A stretch of 63,829 bases of DNA, filler included, from Platydemus manokwari (taxonomy: Eukaryota): NCBI GenBank assembly GCA_037951405.1. It is 6 parts of 6 records of this genome, joined end to end, with 100 filler letters (N's around TTAATTAATTAA, not from the genome) between each part and the next. Parts side by side here need not be neighbours in the genome. Positions count along the whole stretch, not along the records: positions 11,492 to 23,155 come from JBBMOY010537774.1; 5 more parts are not named here. The stretch is one strand, 5' to 3'. Each line of letters starts with the position of its first letter. Positions within the stretch are counted from its first letter, which is position 1. A program made the translations under genes and the position numbers. The notes under the pieces were generated by a model. The model was not told the origin of the DNA. It worked only from the letters and a program-made list of their open reading frames with translations, and made no database searches. This document shows, piece by piece, positions 11,492-23,155 of the stretch.

Positions 11492-12388
11492 TGTTCAGCG
11501 TTATAACAATTTGTGTTAATAAAATACCTGCATAAAAACATGAATAACTTTTGACTCAACCTGGTATAGTTAATCGATATATTATTTAGGTGCAAAAATA
11601 ATGATAATGATTATTGTTCAAATTGCCTTCCACCAAAACTGTTTTTTACAAAGCATATATCAGTGAACTAAAACAGCACAATACACACACACGCGCACAC
11701 ACACATTTCATTCAATTGGTATAAAAATTATTTGTCCTATCTATTATTCTTTATTCTTTTGATTTGTCTCGATAGTTTCAAATCCAACTCCAATATCACA
11801 TTTCAATATAATCCAAACTGATAAATCTTCCAATAGAACCGAACGAAAAATATCTAATAAAAATCTCATTTGATAACCACCATGCTGATGACAATTGAAT
11901 ATGTACAATTTTCAACTCAATTTTCAAACACAAATCTTCTTTTCAAATGATTTGAAAGCCAACGAGATGCCATTGGTAAAAATACGAAATCTAAGAGTCC
12001 AATTCAGCAACAACCACCATATCAAGTCTTATAAGACCACCACTAACACTGGTATTTCGATGAAATAAATTTCTGATGTATAAATATACCCTTCTGAATA
12101 TATTTTTATCTGATTTGACGACAAAGAACTTGTCTATATCACAATATGATCTCCATCCACCAATTTATGGTACACATGTCAATGTCACGACTAAACTTGA
12201 AAATCCTTAAATATTGAAATGTAGAGATGATAAATTAATGTCTGTGAATTAGAATCTATCAAAAATAATCCTTTTCCTGACAACCAAATACCTTAATGGT
12301 TTAATAATTGTGTAGAACCAATCAGATTACATTTTAACGATTACGTCATACACAAGATCACAGGTCATCATCGATCTATTAATCTTAC

Positions 12389-12734
12389 CCCATGGAATGC
12401 TTTAACAATGCTAGATTAGCCGAAACATCATTGTCCATGTTGTCCTCGTTTCTTGCTATCTCTATTTTGTATACGAATTGCAAACACATTCCATTACTTT
12501 CCCCATTATTAGTATTCAACCAAGAACTCCATAATCGAGCAGAATGTTTTTTAATGTTAGGTATTTTCAGCCCGACAGGTCTCATACATGCAGCATCACC
12601 GATTTTAGGTCCATAATTCATTGATTCCCAAACAGCCGTTTGATCTCGTGGATCAGTATTCCATTGACAGAATCTATCTCCATAATTGAATTGACAGTCG
12701 ATCACAGATCGAGTAACATGATCATTTTTTTCTA
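12389..12734 (-). CDS. Variable exon V13 (class B MAM-like part-domain, VEKNDH...LALLKHSMG)
   Basis: Acceptor ttttatAG, donor GG|GTAAGA, 346 nt (1 mod 3), open frame. Confidence 0.88.
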
Positions 12735-15700
12735 CTATAAAAGAAGTTATTCTTATAAACTGTGAGTATTGTGTTAAATAGAACACGGCAACGTCACGGA
12801 ACTATCATCTTTTGAATTCAATTTCATTTTTATTTAAATTCTATATTTGATAAACAAAATCTAATGAATCAGATTGTAAATCATAATTGATAATATTGAA
12901 AGAAAATATAATTTCATAATCATGACGTCATCGTATATTGTTACAATTCGAAAAATTATCTTTTATTACGTCATATAATATTGCCACAGAATTTTTGACA
13001 TAATTCTTCCTTAATCACTTATCAAGATCAATATTAATGATATAATTTATTATCAGGTTCTATTATAATCATTTATTCTTCATCAACTATTGTTGTTTCC
13101 ATACACCTCCGATGAAAACATTGCCCCATCATGGTATAACTTGAATTTTTAAAACTCTAACTTGGAGACGTTATTTTCCATGATATAAAACTATAATTAT
13201 AAATAATAATTTCACTATCTTCATTCATCAAACAGACCCTAATCTTACCCCATTGTATGTTTCAATAATGCTAAATTAGCCAAAACATCATTGTTCCCAT
13301 TATCTTCATTTTTCTCCATTTCTATTTTGTACACGAATTGCAAACACAAACCATTATTGTTTAAATTTTTAGTGTACAACCAAGAACTCCACAACCTGGC
13401 TGAATGCTTTTTAATATTGGGAAAATTTGATGCCACCGGTCTCATACATGCAGCATCACCGATAATCGATCCATAATTCATTGATTCCCAAACAGCTGTC
13501 TGATCTCTTGGATCATCTTTCCAACGACAAAATTGATCTCCATAATTGAATTGACAGTCTAATATAAATTTGGCATCTTGCCCTCGTTGTACCGCTAAAA
13601 GAATTTATTTTGTTTATGAATTTCACAACTATTCAGTTAAAGAGAACATGGCATCGAAAAGGACAACTTGATTTGTTTTTAATTCGAATTTTGGTTTTAT
13701 GTGAAATAAATCATTGATATTGCATCATCGGCATTAATTCATACGTTCAATAAATCGCAGAATAATGCATGTTGTTAAGAATTAATAATAAAAAACTTAA
13801 TAAACATATTTTCTCTCGATATGTCACATCAAATCCTGTGATATTTGAAAGAAAGATTTTAAATTTCTTCTGACTATTTTCTAAAACAAATTCAGAAGCA
13901 AATTTCAGCAATAATTCTTGATCGATATCTTCGATAGTTAGGTCGAAATCAAAAATACCTTAATATAGCTCAAATAATTTCTAGAATCTGTCAACAAGAA
14001 TCAAACAAGCCCATTTCGTATGAAATAGATGAACGTTGTGATGTTTTGAATATCTACCGAATTACAGAGGATAATCGAGAATATTCGATATACATCAATC
14101 AACACTCGAATCGTAGATGTTATTAACAAAGGTATCGACTTAATCATTTCTCTGAGAATATGTCAAATCCAATGGAAATTCTTAAAACTACAACTATTGC
14201 GGATCTTTTTCTTAGATTGATTATAATTAGTCTTGAACCTTATTTTATTTATGATCAAAAATAGCTTGATCAATAAACCTTACCCCATTGTATGTTTCAT
14301 CAATGCTAAATTAGCCAAAACATAATTGTTCTCATTATCTTCATTTTTCTCCATTTCTATTTTGTACACGAATTGCAAACACAATCCCGTATTATTCATA
14401 TTTTTAGTGTACAACCAAGAACTCCACAATCTAGCTGAATGCTTTCTAATATTGGGAAAACTTGATGACACCGGTCTCATACATGCAGCATCACCGATAA
14501 TCGGTCCATAATTCATTGATTCCCAAACAGCTGTCTGATCTCTTGGATCATCATTCCATTTACAAAATTGATCTCCATAATTGAATTGACAGTTCAATAC
14601 AGAATGAGCTTTTTGCCTGTTTTGTATCGCTAAAAGGATTTATTTATATTAAATTACTGGCAATTCCATGGACAGAGAACATGACATCGTGTTGGAACAA
14701 ATATCGCTATACTTAAATGATTTTTTTAATATTCAGTATATCGTGCACCATAAAAATCAAACTATAGTCTGTCATCCTTTTTAAAGACTGAAAGTACTTC
14801 AAACTTGCTTGCCCTTCATTTCCTCACCATACTCACTGTCAAATTGTCAGTAAATAAATAAATCTACAATTCCCATTATCATATTTCTGATAAATTCACA
14901 TTTTTCTCTATCCATATGTTTTGACCAACTATCTTCATAAATAATATTAGAACATAAACTTATCCACTCACCCATCGGAATGTTTCAAAAGCGACAGTAC
15001 TGCTTGGTTTTTATTTTCCTGTCTATCATCACCACCATTATTGTAATCAATATCGATTCTGTATGACAATTTCAAACAAATGTCTTTCGATTTTTCGTTT
15101 TCCAAATTCAACCAAGAACTCCACAAACGGGCAGAATGTTTGTTTACAATCGATATTTTAGACATTATCGGTCTCATACAAGCAGCATCGCCAATAATCG
15201 GTCCGAAATTCCTCGATTCCCAAACGGCAGTTTTATCTCTGGGATCATCATTCCAACGGCAAAAATTGTCCTCATTATCAAATTTACAATTAAGTTTCCT
15301 CTCAATTTTCCCAGCTGCAATTAAAGAATGAGGCTACAACATTTTCCAATAAAAAGTATGCACTGAACAAGATCGATTGCAAAGCAACTTGAATATTGAG
15401 TCAATGAAATGACTTTTACAATATTTTTATTCACAAAAATTTGATCTCCAACTCACCCATCCGAATGTTTGAGAAGAGACAAAGTTACATTTTTCAGAAA
15501 TCCAAAATCGTTCTCTATATAATAACTAAATCGTAAGCATTTTCCAATATCCGTTTCTGCAGTCAACCATTGACTCCATAGTCGACCACTGTACTTCGTT
15601 TGTCTTCGATAACTGATAGGCTTCATACACGCTGATTCACCAATAATTCCGCCGTAGTTTTTTGATTCCCATAATTTCGTTCTATCTCGTGGATCGAGAT

Positions 15701-18700
15701 ACCAATTACAAAACGATTTGGGTTTGAACTCACAATTTAAAACACTTTGGAAATTCTCATTTGTATTGGTGTACTCTACAACCAATCAAATTTGATTTGT
15801 AATTTATTGGTTATTTATTTACTGCAGAAATCAAAGCTCGTTTTCATTTGTTGTTTTGGTTTTTTAAAAAAATATGAGTTTTATTATTTAATTTAATTAT
15901 TCTTACCCCATTTCTCGCCTCATTAAAGTAAGTTTACTCAGATTTGATGCTGGCATGTTATCTATTTTATAACTGAAAGACAGGCATCCGAGAGAAATTT
16001 TTTTTGAAATTACAGGACCCCACAACCGTGCTGTCAAACTCTTCGTAGTTAGAGGATCAAATACCAGACCATCATTTGTTTCTTCGCTTGCTTCCATGCA
16101 CATTGCCTTATTTCTTACGGAACCGGGAATATTAAAAACTTTCCAGTTAATCATCCAATTATTATTGTCATTGCTCCAATAACAGAGATTATTTCTTTCA
16201 AAGTCACATGAAATCTTAGAATTGAATTTAGAGAACTGATTGCTCCCTAAATTACATTACTCAATGACCATTATTTTTTATAAAACATCGTTGATATGGC
16301 TAGTTACTTGGCAACAAATGTTTGTTAACAAGAATTTATTTTTTAATACAAATTTAAATCACCTTAATAACCATTCTTATTCAATTGAACATTTAATAAA
16401 ATCTTCTTTTATTTTTATTTGTGTAAATAAATTGACACAAAAAATAATATTTGTGTTATAAAAACTAAATTTCTATTGGTTGGAAAATTAGACCAATAGA
16501 AACACACCTACCCCATTTCTCTTCTCATCAATGTCAGTTTATTATCATTGCTATTAAACAATTTGTATTTAAAAGTAACACAACGCAATTCTTGATCGGC
16601 TGTCATCGATGGGCTCCAAAGTCGTATTGTCAATATTTCGTTTTTCAATCGAGCAGCTTGACTCATTTTCGGGGAACTTAAACACGTCGCTCGATTTATT
16701 CCGTATTTATTGTCAATTCTATGAATTTTCCAATTCGTCATCCAATTGTTGGCATCATTCATCCAATTACATAAATTATTAGACTCAAAATTACAATCCA
16801 AATCACTGGAAGCTGAAATTAGAAAATTCCTTATTTTAAAAAGGAGCCTAACATTGAGAACAGAGCTCTATTGAATGTATAAAGTCGGTTAAAGACATTA
16901 CCATTTGTTAAAGTTCTAACCCACAAAATTTTCAATGAATCTCAAAAACAACTGGTTATAAAATGTTCATGTTTCTCTTATTACTAACCCCATTTCTCTT
17001 CTCATCAAAGTTAATTTCATTGGTAGATCTCCATCGATTCTGTACTGAAATGAGAAACATCCCAGTACAACTTTCTTCAACACTTCCGGTCCATACAATC
17101 TGGCGGTCAACGAGTCATCACTAATATCTTCAGGAAATTTCAGACATGCTCCACCATTTTCTTGGTTATCATTTGTAAATCCAATCGAATTAAGTGATGT
17201 TTGTTTCCAATTCAATTTCCAATTATTCGGATCATTGTTCCATTTACAAAAACCATTATTGAAAGAACAATCCAAATCCGATACCGCTAAAATCATAGAT
17301 TATCTTAATAAATAGAATCTCAATCGTCATTAAAATACTGAAGAACAAAGCTCGATCACGGTTACGGTTGTCCGTTAGACCAGTTTAATTTATTAAACAC
17401 GCTTTCACACGAAATATCGATATTCCTCAAAGAGCCTTTATTAGCTATTTTATTTAAACAGCCCATACTTGACAAGGCTGGTTTGTTCGGTATTTCGATG
17501 AGCTTGTTGTAATAATTTCATCGCTTTGGAGAGAGCAGCTTGCAACAATTATATGGGAAAGATTTCCGAAATTACATTTCATTTGATAAGCACAGCAAAA
17601 CAAACTCATATATAAATTGTTTCAATTGTTTCTCCAGCGTTGGAGACAATAAATAATTTTCAATATTTTAATGTAATTTACCAACAATTTTCATTTACTA
17701 ACCCCATTTCACGTCTCATCAATGTGAGACGTGTAAAATTATCCTTTTCCATTCTATATTGGAACATTATACAACCCAATTTGACATTTTTCAATATTTC
17801 CGGCCCCCATAATCGAGCAGTTAATAGTTGATAATTAATATTTTCCGTTGATTTCAAACATGCTCCTCCGTTTTCCTGATTGTCATGGTTCATAAATCCA
17901 ATCGAATCAAGAGACGTTTGTTTCCAATTCAATTTCCAATTGTTCTGATCGTTACTCCAATTACAAAACCCGTTCTCGAAAGAACAATCTATGTCCGAGT
18001 TCGCTAAAACGTGCCAAAATGTCACAGTAATAATTTAACTTAAAATTGTCTCAAATGTGCTGAGAACAAGCTCATACTGATTAGATTTCCCCAATAAAAT
18101 TTGTCAATTAAACATGGTTTGAGTATTTCGATTTTACTAACCCCATTTCTCGTCTCATCATCGTCAACTTCATATTTTCATCATTTTCCATTTTGTAAGC
18201 GAAAGAAACACAACCCAATTTGACTCCACTATAGATTACCGGACCCCAGAGTCGACCGGTCAATGCTTTTTCATTGGTCAATTTGTCCATGTTGACATTT
18301 CCAGTTAACTTCAAGCAAGCTTCTCGACGTATCAGGACCCAATTCAACAACCAATTATTGAAATCATTTGCCCATCTACAGAAACCATTATCGAAGTTAC
18401 AATCCAATTCCGTCGTCACTGAAGACAGAAAGACCCAAGATATAAAAGAATTTTTATAAATCGATCATGATCTGAGAACAAAACTAATTGTGGATCACAT
18501 TTGTTTGTCATTTTTATTAACATAATCATCATCTTCTTTTCGATTAATGAATCTTTCTAATAGGGTAACATGGCCTAATAATCCATATTCCAAGAAAAAC
18601 TATTCAAAAAAGATCTATATTCTTCAGTGCATTCTGATTGAAAACAAAATGCGTAAATCGATATCGATGAACAATTTGTTATGAGATTCAACAAAAATTT

Positions 18701-21614
18701 GTATGGCAAAATAATTAACATTTTAATGAAATTAAAACTCCAGAAAATTCTCAGAAGAATTCCTAATAAATAACCAGAGATATCAAAGCAAATTATGTCA
18801 AAATTTTCCTTCTATTATAATACTGCGAAAAAACTGTTTGAAAATTTGATGATAAAATAATCGATTTTAGTATTTCTATTTCACTAACCCCATTTCTCGT
18901 CTCATCATCGTGAGCTTCATATCTTCGACATTTACCATTTTATACACAAATGACACACAACCCAATTTGATTCCACTAAAAATTACCGGACCCCAAAGTC
19001 GAGCTGTTAAAGCTTTTTCATTGGTCAATTTAAACATATTGGGATTGCCCCATAATTTCAAACAAGCTTCTCGATTCACTCGTACCCAATTCAACATCCA
19101 ATTATTGGGATCATTTGACCATCTACAGAAATCATTATCGAAGTTACAATCCAATTCCGATAGCACTGAAGGTAAAAAAAAAAGACCAAAGGTATAAAAT
19201 AGAATTCATTAATCGATCATGATCTGAGAACAAAACTACTTATTAATTTGTCAGTATCTTCAATTTCGTATTTCAATTCCGTTCTTGTTAACTGGAATTA
19301 AGAGATTTTATAATTGATAAGAATCGGAGAACAATGGAAAACGTCACAATTCCTCAATATTTTATACACTGTCAAAGATGTACACCAAGAAACAATACTG
19401 ATCGGAAGAAAGTAAATTTCAATGCTAATATAAAAGCCACTGAGAAATTTGCTTAAAGATTCCAATGATAGATCAAAGTAAATCTTAATTCCATTTTTAT
19501 GCAAATTTAATAACAGATCATAATAATCCATAATCATATTCAATTACATTTCTTCATTTCAAATTGACCAATCGTATTTGCCATAAATAATTGATCGATT
19601 CAAACAATGATAATTTACTGAATCATAGATTTCAATCAATATTGCTATATCATTCTAATTATAACAATCACCACCAATTTCATTCTTAATTAGTCGACTA
19701 AGGCACGTTACAAAATAATAAAACATTTGCTTATCGACTAACCCAATCTCTCGACGCATCAATGTCAGTTTATGATCATCGCTATTGAACAATCGATAAT
19801 TAAACGAAATACAGCTCAAATTGGACTTTTTCGACATCACTTGACTCCAAAGTCTAGCAATCAACTTTTGATCCGGTTCTTCATTGTCCGATCCATCGGT
19901 TCTCATGCACACGGCCTTATGATCGATTTGCGGTTGATCTAAAAATCCCAACGTTTCCAAAGCCACGATTTCCCAATTCAATTTCCAATTATTTGGATCG
20001 TTGGCATATTTGCAAAGCCCATTTTCAAAATTGCAATCCAAATGTGAGGAGGCTGAAAATTTTTAATTTGAATGATTTTTGTGTGTGTCTCTGTCAGTGT
20101 TATAAAAGGAAAATAATTCATCAGCTGAAAAATTATGAATTTTCTGAGAACAAGACTGAATGGAAGGTCTTGTTTTGAAATTTATCCAGGAAAAACAGCA
20201 AAAATCTTGGACGAATTGTAAAGAATTGTTTCGTCATGTGTTCGAAGAAAGTGCTCGGTTCGTGTGAAGAGATGAAGAAATACGATTGAGAAATCCAATG
20301 ATCTTTCAGCATAATAATAATCACATTTATTTTAATGACGAATAAGAAATCTTTTATTTTTTTTTAATAATAAATCGGTTCAGTGAGAGATACACGAATT
20401 CTGCAATTCCTAGCAGACGATCGTTTCCAAGGATTCTAATTATCATATATCGTTTGCTTTTCACCTGAATTAAAAAAAACCAAAATGACATGAAAATGAA
20501 CATCAAATCGATATCAATAAAGGCGGATCCATGTTTTCCTTCTAGACAGTGTAATCATAGATAAATGGATATAACAACATAATAAATCAATTCCTGGATA
20601 AAATATTGCCAAGCAACTCTTCTAATAATGCCTTCAAGGACGTACAAATTGAACACAAAATATAAACAGATGCCATTATATTTACACAAATTTCGATAGA
20701 AACACCATTCTTATCCTTACAACAAGGGTCAAATAGAAACACCATTACCAAAAATAGACAGCCAATCAGAGACAATTACATCGATGACAACAGTGCATTA
20801 CGCCGCCACATGCCAATTGATTTAAACAAATCGAAAAAATTAATTCAATGCTATGAATTCCATTGATTATCGATGAAATCGATATTTTCCATGTATAAAA
20901 AATCAATAAATATTTCACTAACCTCATTTCGCGTCGCAGCAAAGTGATTTTGGTGTTTCCAGATTTTATGTAATTAAAACTGATACATTTAAGTGAGGTC
21001 TTTTGATTAGACTTCCTAACGACAGGCGACAACAGTCGAACAGCATTCAAAGTTTCACTGCCACCAAAATTTTCATTTTCAACATTATCAAGACTTATGC
21101 AAATTCCATTGGTTTTAAATTCGGTGGATTTTTCACGATCCAGATAATTGAGATTGGTCACTTTCCAATTCGTAATCCAATTGTTCCCATCGTTAATCCA
21201 TTGACAGAGATTGTATTCGAACTGACAGTCGATATTCCAGGAATTATATTTTCCTATTTCATGTCTATATTACAGCAAATCTATTCGATTATGTTCAAGT
21301 TATTAAAAGTTCTTTATAGTGGCACATGCTATTCTATTACGTAATAATATCATATTTTTCCAAATACGCATAATGAGTCATCTACCAAGCACTTCTACAG
21401 TTTCCCTTAAACAAATTTAATCTAGAATTTTATTATTTTAAAATAGTTATTTTTTTCCCTGTATTTCTAGAGTAACCAAACGTAAAATTTAGTAATAGAT
21501 TTTATAGTTCCAAGCAACGAGCCTTGTTCTCAGTGCATTTACAAAAAATAAAGAATAATAATTACCTGCCGCGTAACCCATAATACACAAAAACAAAATC
21601 GCTTTCATAGTCAT
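12389..21614 (-). CDS. MAM-like domain gene, 5' part: signal-peptide exon plus 13 mutually exclusive variable exons (constant 3' exons not resolved)
   Basis: Leader exon has a phase-1 donor. Thirteen paralogous exons have AG/GT boundaries, all phase 1 to 2, with the motif C-x-F-x(3-5)-C-x-W...RL(W)xx...C-x-x-F-x-Y typical of the N-terminal part of MAM domains. Docking/selector complementarity is present. Confidence 0.85.
12780..12805 (-). promoter_or_regulatory. Selector sequence for V13
   Basis: + strand AGAACACGGCAACGTCACGGAACTAT versus docking sense AGAACAAGGC-TCGTTGCTTGGAACTAT, about 46 nt upstream of the acceptor. Confidence 0.72.
13249..13594 (-). CDS. Variable exon V12 (class B, AVQRGQD...LALLKHTMG)
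   Basis: Acceptor tcttttAG, donor GG|GTAAGA, 346 nt, open frame. Confidence 0.88.
13642..13656 (-). promoter_or_regulatory. Selector sequence for V12
   Basis: + strand GAGAACATGGCATCG versus docking GAGAACAAGGC-TCG. Confidence 0.7.
14284..14629 (-). CDS. Variable exon V11 (class B, AIQNRQK...LALMKHTMG)
   Basis: Acceptor ccttttAG, donor GG|GTAAGG, 346 nt, open frame. Confidence 0.88.
14668..14698 (-). promoter_or_regulatory. Selector sequence for V11
   Basis: + strand ATGGACAGAGAACATGACATCGTGTTGGAAC versus docking ATGCACTGAGAACAAGGC-TCGTTGCTTGGAAC. Confidence 0.75.
14972..15314 (-). CDS. Variable exon V10 (class B, AGKIERKLNCKF...LSLLKHSDG)
   Basis: Acceptor aattgcAG, donor GG|GTGAGT, 343 nt, open frame. 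Confidence 0.88.
15358..15380 (-). promoter_or_regulatory. Selector sequence for V10
   Basis: + strand ATGCACTGAACAAGATCGATTGC versus docking ATGCACTGAGAACAAGGCTCGTTGC. Confidence 0.75.
15457..15775 (-). CDS. Variable exon V9 (class B, EYTNTNE...LSLLKHSDG)
   Basis: Acceptor ggttgtAG, donor GG|GTGAGT, 319 nt, open frame. Confidence 0.86.
15821..15842 (-). promoter_or_regulatory. Selector sequence for V9
   Basis: + strand ACTGCAGAAATCAAAGCTCGTT versus docking ACTG-AGAA--CAAGGCTCGTT. Confidence 0.68.
15907..16246 (-). CDS. Variable exon V8 (class A, GSNQFSKFNSKISCDFE...LTLMRREMG)
   Basis: Phase-1 acceptor taatttAG, donor GG|GTAAGA, 340 nt, open frame. Confidence 0.84.
16298..16315 (-). promoter_or_regulatory. 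Selector sequence for V8 (pairs with the distal half of the docking site)
   Basis: + strand GGCTAGTTACTTGGCAAC versus docking GGCTCGTTGCTTGG-AAC, about 52 nt upstream of the acceptor. Confidence 0.62.
16512..16812 (-). CDS. Variable exon V7 (class A, ASSDLDCNFE...LTLMRREMG)
   Basis: Acceptor aatttcAG, donor GG|GTAGGT, 301 nt, open frame. Confidence 0.88.
16852..16868 (-). promoter_or_regulatory. Selector sequence for V7
   Basis: + strand CATTGAGAACAGAGCTC versus docking CACTGAGAACAAGGCTC. Confidence 0.75.
16989..17286 (-). CDS. Variable exon V6 (class A, AVSDLDCSF...LTLMRREMG)
   Basis: Acceptor gattttAG, donor GG|GTTAGT, 298 nt, open frame. Confidence 0.88.
17337..17354 (-). promoter_or_regulatory. 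Selector sequence for V6
   Basis: + strand ACTGAAGAACAAAGCTCG versus docking ACTG-AGAACAAGGCTCG. Confidence 0.78.
17703..18003 (-). CDS. Variable exon V5 (class A, ANSDIDCSF...LTLMRREMG)
   Basis: Acceptor cgttttAG, donor GG|GTTAGT, 301 nt, open frame. Confidence 0.88.
18053..18073 (-). promoter_or_regulatory. Selector sequence for V5
   Basis: + strand AAATGTGCTGAGAACAAGCTC versus docking AAATGCACTGAGAACAAGGCTC. Confidence 0.82.
18142..18418 (-). CDS. Variable exon V4 (class A, VTTELDCNF...LTMMRREMG)
   Basis: Acceptor gtcttcAG, donor GG|GTTAGT, 277 nt, open frame. Confidence 0.88.
18472..18485 (-). promoter_or_regulatory. Selector sequence for V4
   Basis: + strand CTGAGAACAAAACT versus docking CTGAGAACAAGGCT: 14 bp including 2 G-U pairs. 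Confidence 0.8.
18889..19165 (-). CDS. Variable exon V3 (class A, VLSELDCNF...LTMMRREMG)
   Basis: Acceptor accttcAG, donor GG|GTTAGT, 277 nt, open frame. Confidence 0.88.
19224..19237 (-). promoter_or_regulatory. Selector sequence for V3
   Basis: + strand CTGAGAACAAAACT versus docking CTGAGAACAAGGCT: 14 bp including 2 G-U pairs. Confidence 0.8.
19743..20052 (-). CDS. Variable exon V2 (class A, ASSHLDCNFE...LTLMRREIG)
   Basis: Acceptor attttcAG, donor GG|GTTAGT, 310 nt, open frame. Confidence 0.88.
20144..20157 (-). promoter_or_regulatory. Selector sequence for V2
   Basis: + strand CTGAGAACAAGACT versus docking CTGAGAACAAGGCT: 14 bp including 1 G-U pair, about 92 nt upstream of the acceptor. 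Confidence 0.8.
20923..21253 (-). CDS. Variable exon V1 (class A, divergent, GKYNSWNIDCQFE...ITLLRREMR)
   Basis: Phase-1 acceptor gaaatAG (weak pyrimidine tract), donor AG|GTTAGT, 331 nt, open frame. Confidence 0.8.
21501..21540 (-). promoter_or_regulatory. Intronic docking site (transcript sense AAAUGCACUGAGAACAAGGCUCGUUGCUUGGAACUAUAAA)
   Basis: Single GC-richer island about 25 nt downstream of the leader-exon donor, reverse-complementary to the motif upstream of V2-V13. Confidence 0.85.
21566..21614 (-). CDS. Leader exon encoding a signal peptide MTMKAILFLCIMGYAA
   Basis: ATG, basic residue, hydrophobic core and small residues at the end. Donor CAG|GTAAT is phase 1, matching all 13 variable-exon acceptors. 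Confidence 0.85.
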
Positions 21615-23155
21615 CTAAATAAAGAAAAACTTGTAAATTCAGAATTTCTTAAATATATTTAATAAAAATAAAAAAGTTCAATACAATTCCATAAATTTGG
21701 TTTTGACGCTTAAAAAATTATTCTCCAAACTTATTCATTAAATTAATTATAAAATTAATCATATTTATTAGATAAATATATTAAAAAATCCAAATGAGAA
21801 GGTTGACAGGTATTGAAACATTATTTAAAAATTTTTAAATTATTTTTACGATTTATTTTTCCAATTAAATGGTAAGATTTTAAAACTTACCATAAACAAT
21901 GAATAGTATTTCAAATAACACAGAATGAGTAATAAAAGTTAAATTTTCCACAAATAAGATTGAAAAATTAATATATATAAACAAATCAATTTGAAACAAA
22001 TTTTTTATTAGGTTTAAATCTGATGTACAGATTTTTCATCACAGTAATCTTTTTTTTGCTTATTTTATCGTTTAAAAACTATAATTTAATTTTATACATC
22101 AAGTTCGATCGTAAGTTGCATTTACCAAAATAATTCACATTTTTTAAATTCAAATTCTTATGACATTCATTCATCTTTTCTTTTAACCAAATAATTATCA
22201 GATAAAATTTTTTATGGAAATTTATAAGCAAAAATACGGGTGTTTAATTCTCAATAGTTAAAATTTTCATATTTAATCCCTTCATTTAATAATTTAAGCA
22301 ATTTTATAAATGAATCCCGTTGCTTTTGAGAATATTTTAATTAAAAATTTTATTCCAGCAAATTGTGCTGCATCGTCATTTTACTTGGAGCAATTTTCTA
22401 CCTGGAGTCAATAGATTTTGACGTATATGAGTTATGCTAAAGTAAAAAATTATTCAAAATATTTCCATAAAAATTTGCTGTTGAAGTTATTTAAATATAT
22501 AACTAATTTTATTTTCATACTAATTTCACTTAGCCATTTATTTTATTATTTTTGATAAAAACAAGAATTTTTTTATATTTCATCATTAACCAAAAACAAA
22601 TACCAATCAATTTCTTCAGTAGAATACGCGATTATTAATTTTGCTTAAACGATTTAAATGATAAAAGTGGCTTACTTTAAGAAGAAAAATAATAATTTTT
22701 ATGGTTATCTTAATTTTTTGTTATATACTTAAAATATTATATATTGAGAATTTTATCGAGAAAATTATAGAGATTTAAGTTTAATAAATTAGTAGTGATA
22801 TAAACCAATATTTGACACTACACTCTTGATTTATTTTTATATTTAATTATCATTAACTTTCTTTATAATATTCACTAGATCACTTTGTTCGTTTCTAGAT
22901 TCGCTCATTTGTTCATATTATAAAAAATAATTACAATTAAATATTAAAATAATTTGATAATAAAATGCCAGATACTAGTTTATACCACTGCTACGATCAT
23001 AAAATAAAAATTTATACTATAACATGAAATTCTAAAAAAATTATAATAAGAAATTTATAGAGAAAAATTCATAAAATTTCATAAAAAAAATTTATAATCA
23101 TAAAATAAAAATATCACGTAATTTGAACAACTATATTAAAAATATAAAAATAGGT

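Follow-up and report, generated by a model that had tools for sequence, protein, structure and literature searches.

A candidate docking site-selector array of alternative MAM exons in the flatworm Platydemus manokwari and the wobble bias of its selectors

Organization of the locus

The window, a stretch of 63,829 nucleotides of Platydemus manokwari DNA with filler included, holds the locus in the piece at positions 11492-23155 (JBBMOY010537774.1), where G+C content is 29-35% and drops to about 20% beyond 21500. Open reading frames, splice sites and intron phases place the gene on the minus strand. Read in that direction, a signal-peptide exon is followed by an intronic docking site and then by 13 tandem alternative exons, V1 to V13 (Table 1). 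Exon 1 ends in phase 1 at a GTAATT donor. The 13 homologous V exons are 277-346 nt long, and every one begins in phase 1 and finishes in phase 2, with a length of 3n+1. Their acceptors are pyrimidine-rich and end in AG, their donors read GTAAG, GTTAG, GTGAG or GTAGG, and the reading frame is intact in 13 of 13. In the exon tree, V11 and V12 are sisters (90% identical), as are V5 and V6. No further exon was found in the 897 nt that follow V13, and the remainder of the gene lies outside the piece. Contigs of the sole run that holds the locus, which is not recorded as RNA, cover it patchily and contain one repeat-like joint and no splice joints.

Table 1. Exons, docking site and selectors of the array (positions along the window; dG in kcal/mol for the duplex with the docking site)
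Feature	Positions	Strand	Remarks
Exon 1	21566..21614	-	start codon, then a hydrophobic leader resembling a signal peptide (MTMKAILFLCIMGYAA)
Docking site, intron 1	21505..21545	-	begins ~20 nt beyond the donor of exon 1; core ~21510-21538
V1	20923..21253	-	331 nt; codes for the N-terminal part of MAM; no selector found
Selector of V2	20132..20166	-	dG -27.3; 13-bp helix 20144-20156; G-U at +20155
V2	19743..20052	-	310 nt
Selector of V3	19212..19243	-	dG -24.6; 14-bp helix with two G-U
V3	18889..19165	-	277 nt
Selector of V4	18460..18495	-	dG -29.9; two G-U as in V3, common by descent
V4	18142..18418	-	277 nt
Selector of V5	18051..18086	-	dG -31.2; two antisense-type changes, GCAC>GTGC
V5	17703..18003	-	301 nt
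Selector of V6	17336..17362	-	dG -28.3; 13-bp helix with G-U; 17 nt identical in contig L021
V6	16989..17286	-	298 nt
Selector of V7	16845..16878	-	dG -26.8
V7	16512..16812	-	301 nt
Selector of V8	16276..16316	-	dG -27.0; core 16303-16311
V8	15907..16246	-	340 nt
Selector core of V9	15827..15842	-	whole duplex 15795-15860, dG -24.7
V9	15457..15775	-	319 nt
Selector of V10	15357..15390	-	dG -31.3
V10	14972..15314	-	343 nt
Selector of V11	14659..14699	-	dG -30.2
V11	14284..14629	-	346 nt
Selector of V12	13641..13669	-	dG -22.0, the weakest; no G-U pair
V12	13249..13594	-	346 nt
Selector core of V13	12780..12805	-	whole duplex 12751-12805, dG -29.6; adjacent U-G and G-U at +12795 and +12796
V13	12389..12734	-	346 nt; next constant exon expected beyond the piece edge

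All 10 exons tested align to positions 1 to ~95 of the 158 positions of the MAM profile (Pfam PF00629). Six of them score above the Pfam gathering cut-off, with E values of 2.6e-7 to 3.3e-10, and V9, V10, V12 and V13 fall below it. Each V exon codes for the N-terminal ~60% of a MAM domain. Some introns between V exons measure only 131-176 nt, too little to hold the remainder of the domain between those exons. Among named proteins, the nearest homologues (27-38% identity) are trematode and cestode proteins annotated as MAM domain-containing, from the genera Paragonimus, Opisthorchis, Dibothriocephalus, Spirometra and Hydatigera. The region is best explained as the variable stretch of a gene, on the minus strand, whose product is a MAM-domain protein, either secreted or at the surface.

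The V exons carry acceptor sites and are compatible in phase with exon 1, and any V exon read straight after another V exon runs into a stop within 3-27 codons. Because joining two V exons yields stops, and because none has a start codon or signal peptide of its own, we take them to be internal alternatives, one per productive mRNA. From the reading frames and the anatomy of the array, we infer that only one V exon is retained in each mRNA.

Proposed docking site and selectors

The docking site is ~33 nt long, and the two G residues that carry most of its wobble pairs correspond to C at +21522 and +21523. Twelve of the 13 variants, V2 to V13, are each preceded by a selector that lies 16-79 nt upstream of the acceptor and is complementary to the docking site. 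The 12 docking-selector duplexes have predicted free energies of -22.0 to -31.3 kcal/mol; for 53 control intron windows of 70 nt the mean against the same docking site is -13.7 kcal/mol, and one of the 53 reaches -22. In a scan for k-mers whose complement recurs in most introns the docking site ranked first, and its 14-mer, with up to 3 mismatches allowed, has 5 matches versus 0.2 expected.

The selectors do not all address the same part of the docking site. Those of V2-V7 use the 5' and central parts, those of V10-V13 reach both ends, and the V8 selector, which lacks the GAGAACAA core, pairs with the 3' half only. All pairs of selectors nevertheless overlap on the docking site, which implies that a single duplex can form at a time. 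For V1, no selector was found in its upstream intron, where the best duplex (-15.9 kcal/mol) is at background level.

Generic tools recover little of this arrangement. Rfam gave no match for the region. The output of a generic inverted-repeat finder consists mostly of chance pairs rich in A and T, with docking-selector pairs represented only by entries I10 and I17. In k-mer motif discovery within the introns, AT-rich words dominate and the known selectors are missed.

Some further elements in the array deserve mention in their own right. The intron between V3 and V4 contains a second, partial docking-like element in docking orientation (18613-18635, + strand; TTCTTCAGTGCATT compared with GTTCTCAGTGCATT). 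Of all the selectors, only those of V6 and V10 form appreciable duplexes with its RNA (-23.0 and -24.6 kcal/mol), and these are weaker than the duplexes of the main docking site. The element may be a relic, or it may act as a modulator. Upstream of V6 (17454-17512, + strand), a selector-like ACAAGGCTGG (~17465-17480) adjoins a docking-like GAGCTTGT (~17497-17512). These two could fold as a local hairpin with the sequence of the docking-selector helix, and such a hairpin would suit a stem-loop duplication model of the origin of the cluster. One control window in the intron upstream of V13 (13092-13146, + strand) forms a docking duplex of -25.3 kcal/mol in sense and -10.0 kcal/mol in antisense, with 7 G-U pairs. 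This is either a G-U-rich match that arose by chance or an additional weak selector. Finally, V1 (20923-21253; upstream region 21254-21495) combines intact splice sites and an intact frame with the missing selector, and a search for V1 homologues in the protein collection found none. V1 may be a lineage-specific default exon.

Related species

Single-exon searches identified homologous contigs from three other species, in Logan SRR33002330 (L001, L004, L005, L022 and L023), ENA ERZ27256860 (L002, L003 and L024) and Logan SRR21676451 (L021). Their tandem exons are 46-91% identical to V2-V13, with 65-91% identity for orthologous exons, and each has a selector-like element upstream. When orthologous introns were compared, no block was better conserved than the selector in 9 of 11 cases. 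The wobble-forming U is kept in the orthologues of V2 and V6; one V3-like orthologue has C in place of V3's U. Across the 24 related selectors AACAA is invariant, and the adjacent GG reads A in 11/24 and 8/24.

The orthologous docking site was sought through V1 homologues, which gave nothing. A scan of metagenomes with the docking-core pattern returned 11 loci, none with MAM exons, and we regard these as chance matches.

Two minor features of these contigs may be recorded. Upstream of the first intact exon of L001 (180-300) there is an apparent decayed copy of a variable exon with a stop codon; it ends ...AGAGAAATGGG followed by ATTAGT rather than a GT donor. In L002 (951-1340, - strand), an open reading frame beside a MAM exon resembles, by eye, a transposase fragment.

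Selector substitutions

An earlier note on this DNA had listed + strand substitutions by which the selectors depart from the docking sense sequence, and had argued that on the minus-strand RNA these become wobble pairs rather than mismatches. Both statements hold. The selector alignments contain every listed change: AAGACT in V2 (20146-20159), AAAACT in V3 (19224-19237) and V4 (18472-18485), AAAGCT in V6 (17342-17354) and V9 (15832-15842), TTACTT in V8 (16303-16311) and CGTCAC in V13 (about 12790-12797). Each one gives a G-U or U-G pair in the minus-strand duplex. Missing from that list are changes of the opposite type, namely GCAC>GTGC in V5, CACTG>CATTG and CAAGG>CAGAG in V7, and one C>T in V8.

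For a full tabulation, the + strand selectors were aligned to the docking sense sequence with a scoring that is blind to mismatch type, and mismatches were classed as wobble-compatible (G>A, T>C), antisense-compatible (C>T, A>G) or transversions. Over the docking core, 20 wobble-compatible changes stand against 9 antisense-compatible ones (Fisher's test by cells, p=0.049), and transversions do not differ between the classes. The contrast sharpens in the central helix to 14 versus 3 (p=0.001), with transversions at 5% versus 12%, a difference that is not significant. In the optimal duplexes, 35 G-U pairs form in sense versus 28 in antisense.

The predicted excess is found in the core and central helix, but its breadth is limited. 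The two G of docking-RNA AAGGCU (+21523 and +21522), neither of which is in a CpG, account for 9 of the 17 helix-embedded wobble changes, and when both (S28 and S29) are omitted the window gives 11 versus 9 (p=0.49). The changes in V3 and V4 are shared by descent; counting them once leaves 15 versus 5 (p about 0.02-0.04), and allowing one event per docking position leaves 9 versus 4, which is not significant (p about 0.13-0.19). The wobble excess is real, but it rests mainly on two docking-site bases.

The related species add to this count. Scored on the docking sequence of this window, and hence on the assumption that their docking sites match it, the 24 selectors of the three species carry 34 wobble-compatible versus 9 opposite transitions, or 47 versus 15 over all cells. 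With the two hot positions left out, a hand count gives 28/287 versus 15/322 cells, approximately a twofold excess.

Mutational bias had been raised in the earlier note as a caveat, G>A being the favoured change in an AT-rich genome. Substitutions between recent paralogues, polarised by an outgroup paralogue, number C>T 20, G>A 27, A>G 37 and T>C 38 on the sense strand and are strand-symmetric; this symmetric spectrum together with the docking composition gives a null wobble fraction of 0.53. Within the central helix, G>A occupies 13/55 cells versus 1/36 for C>T. The caveat is answered in part by the symmetric spectrum and this contrast, with the weakness that, within the window, two docking positions and a small number of independent events carry the bias.

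Comparison of duplex free energies for sense and antisense RNA, which had been proposed as a further check, does not discriminate. The sense duplex is the more stable in 10 of 12 selectors, and the mean sense-minus-antisense difference is -3.2 kcal/mol for the selectors versus -2.8 kcal/mol at the 53 control intron windows (p=0.42). The comparison is uninformative because G and U outweigh C and A in the sense strand of the introns (G 0.157 versus C 0.119; T 0.378 versus A 0.346), and we rejected sense-over-antisense stability as evidence of RNA selection, since the controls show the same gain.

One could accept the array as real and still attribute the wobble excess to a few old events at two docking positions, passed on to duplicated or orthologous selectors, and to the G+U richness of the sense strand, in which case it would not be independent evidence. 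The loss of the excess without S28 and S29, the collapse per docking position, the changes shared by V3 and V4 and the energy asymmetry equal to that of the controls would all follow, and orthologues agree in state at the hot positions, which makes the changes old. Against this, the exon tree demands several origins, as V11 differs from its sister V12 and V6 from V5, and a CpG effect at the hot positions is excluded by their sequence. At flanking A/C positions the 24 related selectors contain no transitions, despite equal transversion rates, and the twofold excess in relatives persists without the two positions. We consider this explanation rather unlikely.

Another possibility is that the repeated intron element is a splicing signal recognised by a protein (UUGUUCUC-like), which was duplicated together with each exon and matches the docking site only incidentally, so that selection would act on a motif rather than on pairing; in our judgement this is very improbable. 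The GAGAACAA core on the + strand is indeed common to most selectors, and tandem duplication alone could spread such an element. A single protein-binding motif does not fit, however, because different selectors pair with different stretches of the docking site: the V8 selector, without the core, still complements the docking 3' half and has almost nothing in common with that of V3, and the selectors of V10-V13 and of the relatives reach the docking 3' end (GGAAC). Nor would a motif require the single inverted copy beside exon 1, or predict an asymmetry between G/U and A/C positions.

Selection on RNA pairing in the minus-strand pre-mRNA, as the earlier note had proposed, is the best reading, and the inference of the note is supported in part. 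Pairing is favored because the gene lies on the minus strand, because the selectors match differing stretches of one docking site, because the selector is usually the sole conserved intron block in the relatives, and because transitions, unlike transversions, cluster at docking G/U positions. Architecture, conservation and this contrast between position classes support it more than the raw wobble count does; taken alone, the wobble statistic supports RNA-level selection only modestly. Wobble arguments are standard evidence for RNA structures. An analysis of this kind is a cheap way to assign the strand and an RNA constraint, and the limits seen here make it essential to control for composition and to count independent events.

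Discussion

We regard it as probable, judging from sequence, that the locus is a Dscam-style docking-selector array in which exons are chosen one at a time and in which an RNA-pairing constraint gives rise to the wobble excess. In such an array, the docking site just after exon 1 would pair with one of the twelve selectors upstream of V2-V13. The duplex would loop out the intervening exons and bring forward the next downstream exon to be spliced onto exon 1, in the manner of Dscam1 exon 6, and V1, which has no selector, would be the default choice. A selector C>U opposite a docking G, or A>G opposite a docking U, would be tolerated as a G-U pair, and the mirror changes would be purged. On the + strand, the expected outcome is an excess of G>A and T>C that peaks at the GG of AAGGCU.

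The closest known counterpart is Dscam1 exon 6 of insects and crustaceans, for which the docking site-selector model was put forward (Graveley 2005, in the summary given in PMC6071210). In both cases, the docking site lies in the intron right after the upstream constant exon and one selector precedes each variant, the selectors overlap on the docking site, the duplexes include G-U pairs, and the variants are tandem duplicates that code for the N-terminal part of an extracellular domain. Unlike Dscam1, the gene described here codes for a MAM-domain protein rather than an Ig-superfamily member and belongs to a flatworm rather than an arthropod. It has 13 variants versus about 48, a shorter docking core (about 33 nt) and a first variant without a selector, and it is known from sequence alone. 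An hrp36-type repressor and a locus control region are known for Dscam1, and none is known here.

Smaller clusters in which competing RNA pairings enforce exclusive exons include insect 14-3-3 zeta, Mhc, MRP1 and srp and mammalian ATE1 (PMC4691838, PMC7797038). They share with the MAM array the choice of exon by competing intron pairings and an origin in tandem exon duplication. They differ in that they comprise 2-8 exons and mostly rely on downstream docking or bidirectional pairing, whereas the docking site of the MAM array is upstream and serves 12 selectors.

A full-text literature search found no paper tying MAM domains or flatworms to docking-selector clusters. To our knowledge, the large docking-selector arrays described to date are essentially those of arthropod Dscam1, apart from a few small insect and mammalian clusters. 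The MAM exon array seems to be new for a non-arthropod gene.

Comparable half-domain units occur in parasitic flatworms. A locus of Paragonimus heterotremus (L006, LUCH01001724.1) and a 28-kb Logan contig from a distant relative (L019) contain 15-16 tandem half-MAM units. In the Paragonimus gene models, N-terminal half-MAM units follow one another in a chain, each closing, like the V exons, with L-x-L-L-[RK]-x-x-x-G, and the trematode and cestode loci resemble the P. manokwari array in both respects. Unlike it, their proteins are annotated as single long proteins, and the ranges of L006 and L019 that were fetched, which may miss the docking site, show no convincing selector or docking element shared with it.

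These trematode gene models, which join such units into one long protein, are a point in favor of the view that the V exons are not mutually exclusive, whether as constitutive multi-MAM repeats, as alternative first exons each driven by a promoter of its own, as in protocadherin or sDscam genes, or as decaying copies; we find this hardly credible, given that joining two V exons shifts the frame and gives early stops, that the exons hold only an N-terminal MAM part with introns too short for the rest, that they have acceptors fitting exon 1 in phase and neither start codon nor signal peptide, and that all 13 frames are intact with well-conserved orthologues. In the database models (L006 and proteins P0008, P0033 and P0056), successive half-MAM units are fused, apparently through introns, and these models look like mis-annotated alternative-exon arrays.

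More broadly, and only tentatively, the one-at-a-time array may represent a flatworm type of Dscam-like diversification of MAM proteins. A switch that picks 1 of at least 13 half-domain exons would have arisen independently of arthropod Dscam and been conserved across several species, with homologous half-domain arrays of trematodes and cestodes mis-annotated as long proteins and with a possible second, C-terminal array in L019 that would give combinatorial isoforms. If this is true, the same RNA switch arises repeatedly from tandem exon duplication, here in another fold and probably another phylum, and flatworms, including relatives that parasitise humans, possess an unrecognised hypervariable family of surface or secreted proteins whose gene models need correction.

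The putative second array lies at L019:14300-19900, after 16 tandem half-MAM units. This range contains several repeated short reading frames that end in SDFQV, ADFKVFF or TDFQV, for which Pfam gave no MAM match. They may be repeated C-terminal MAM pieces that form a second alternative-exon array, which, if true, would allow combinatorial isoforms for cell or host recognition.
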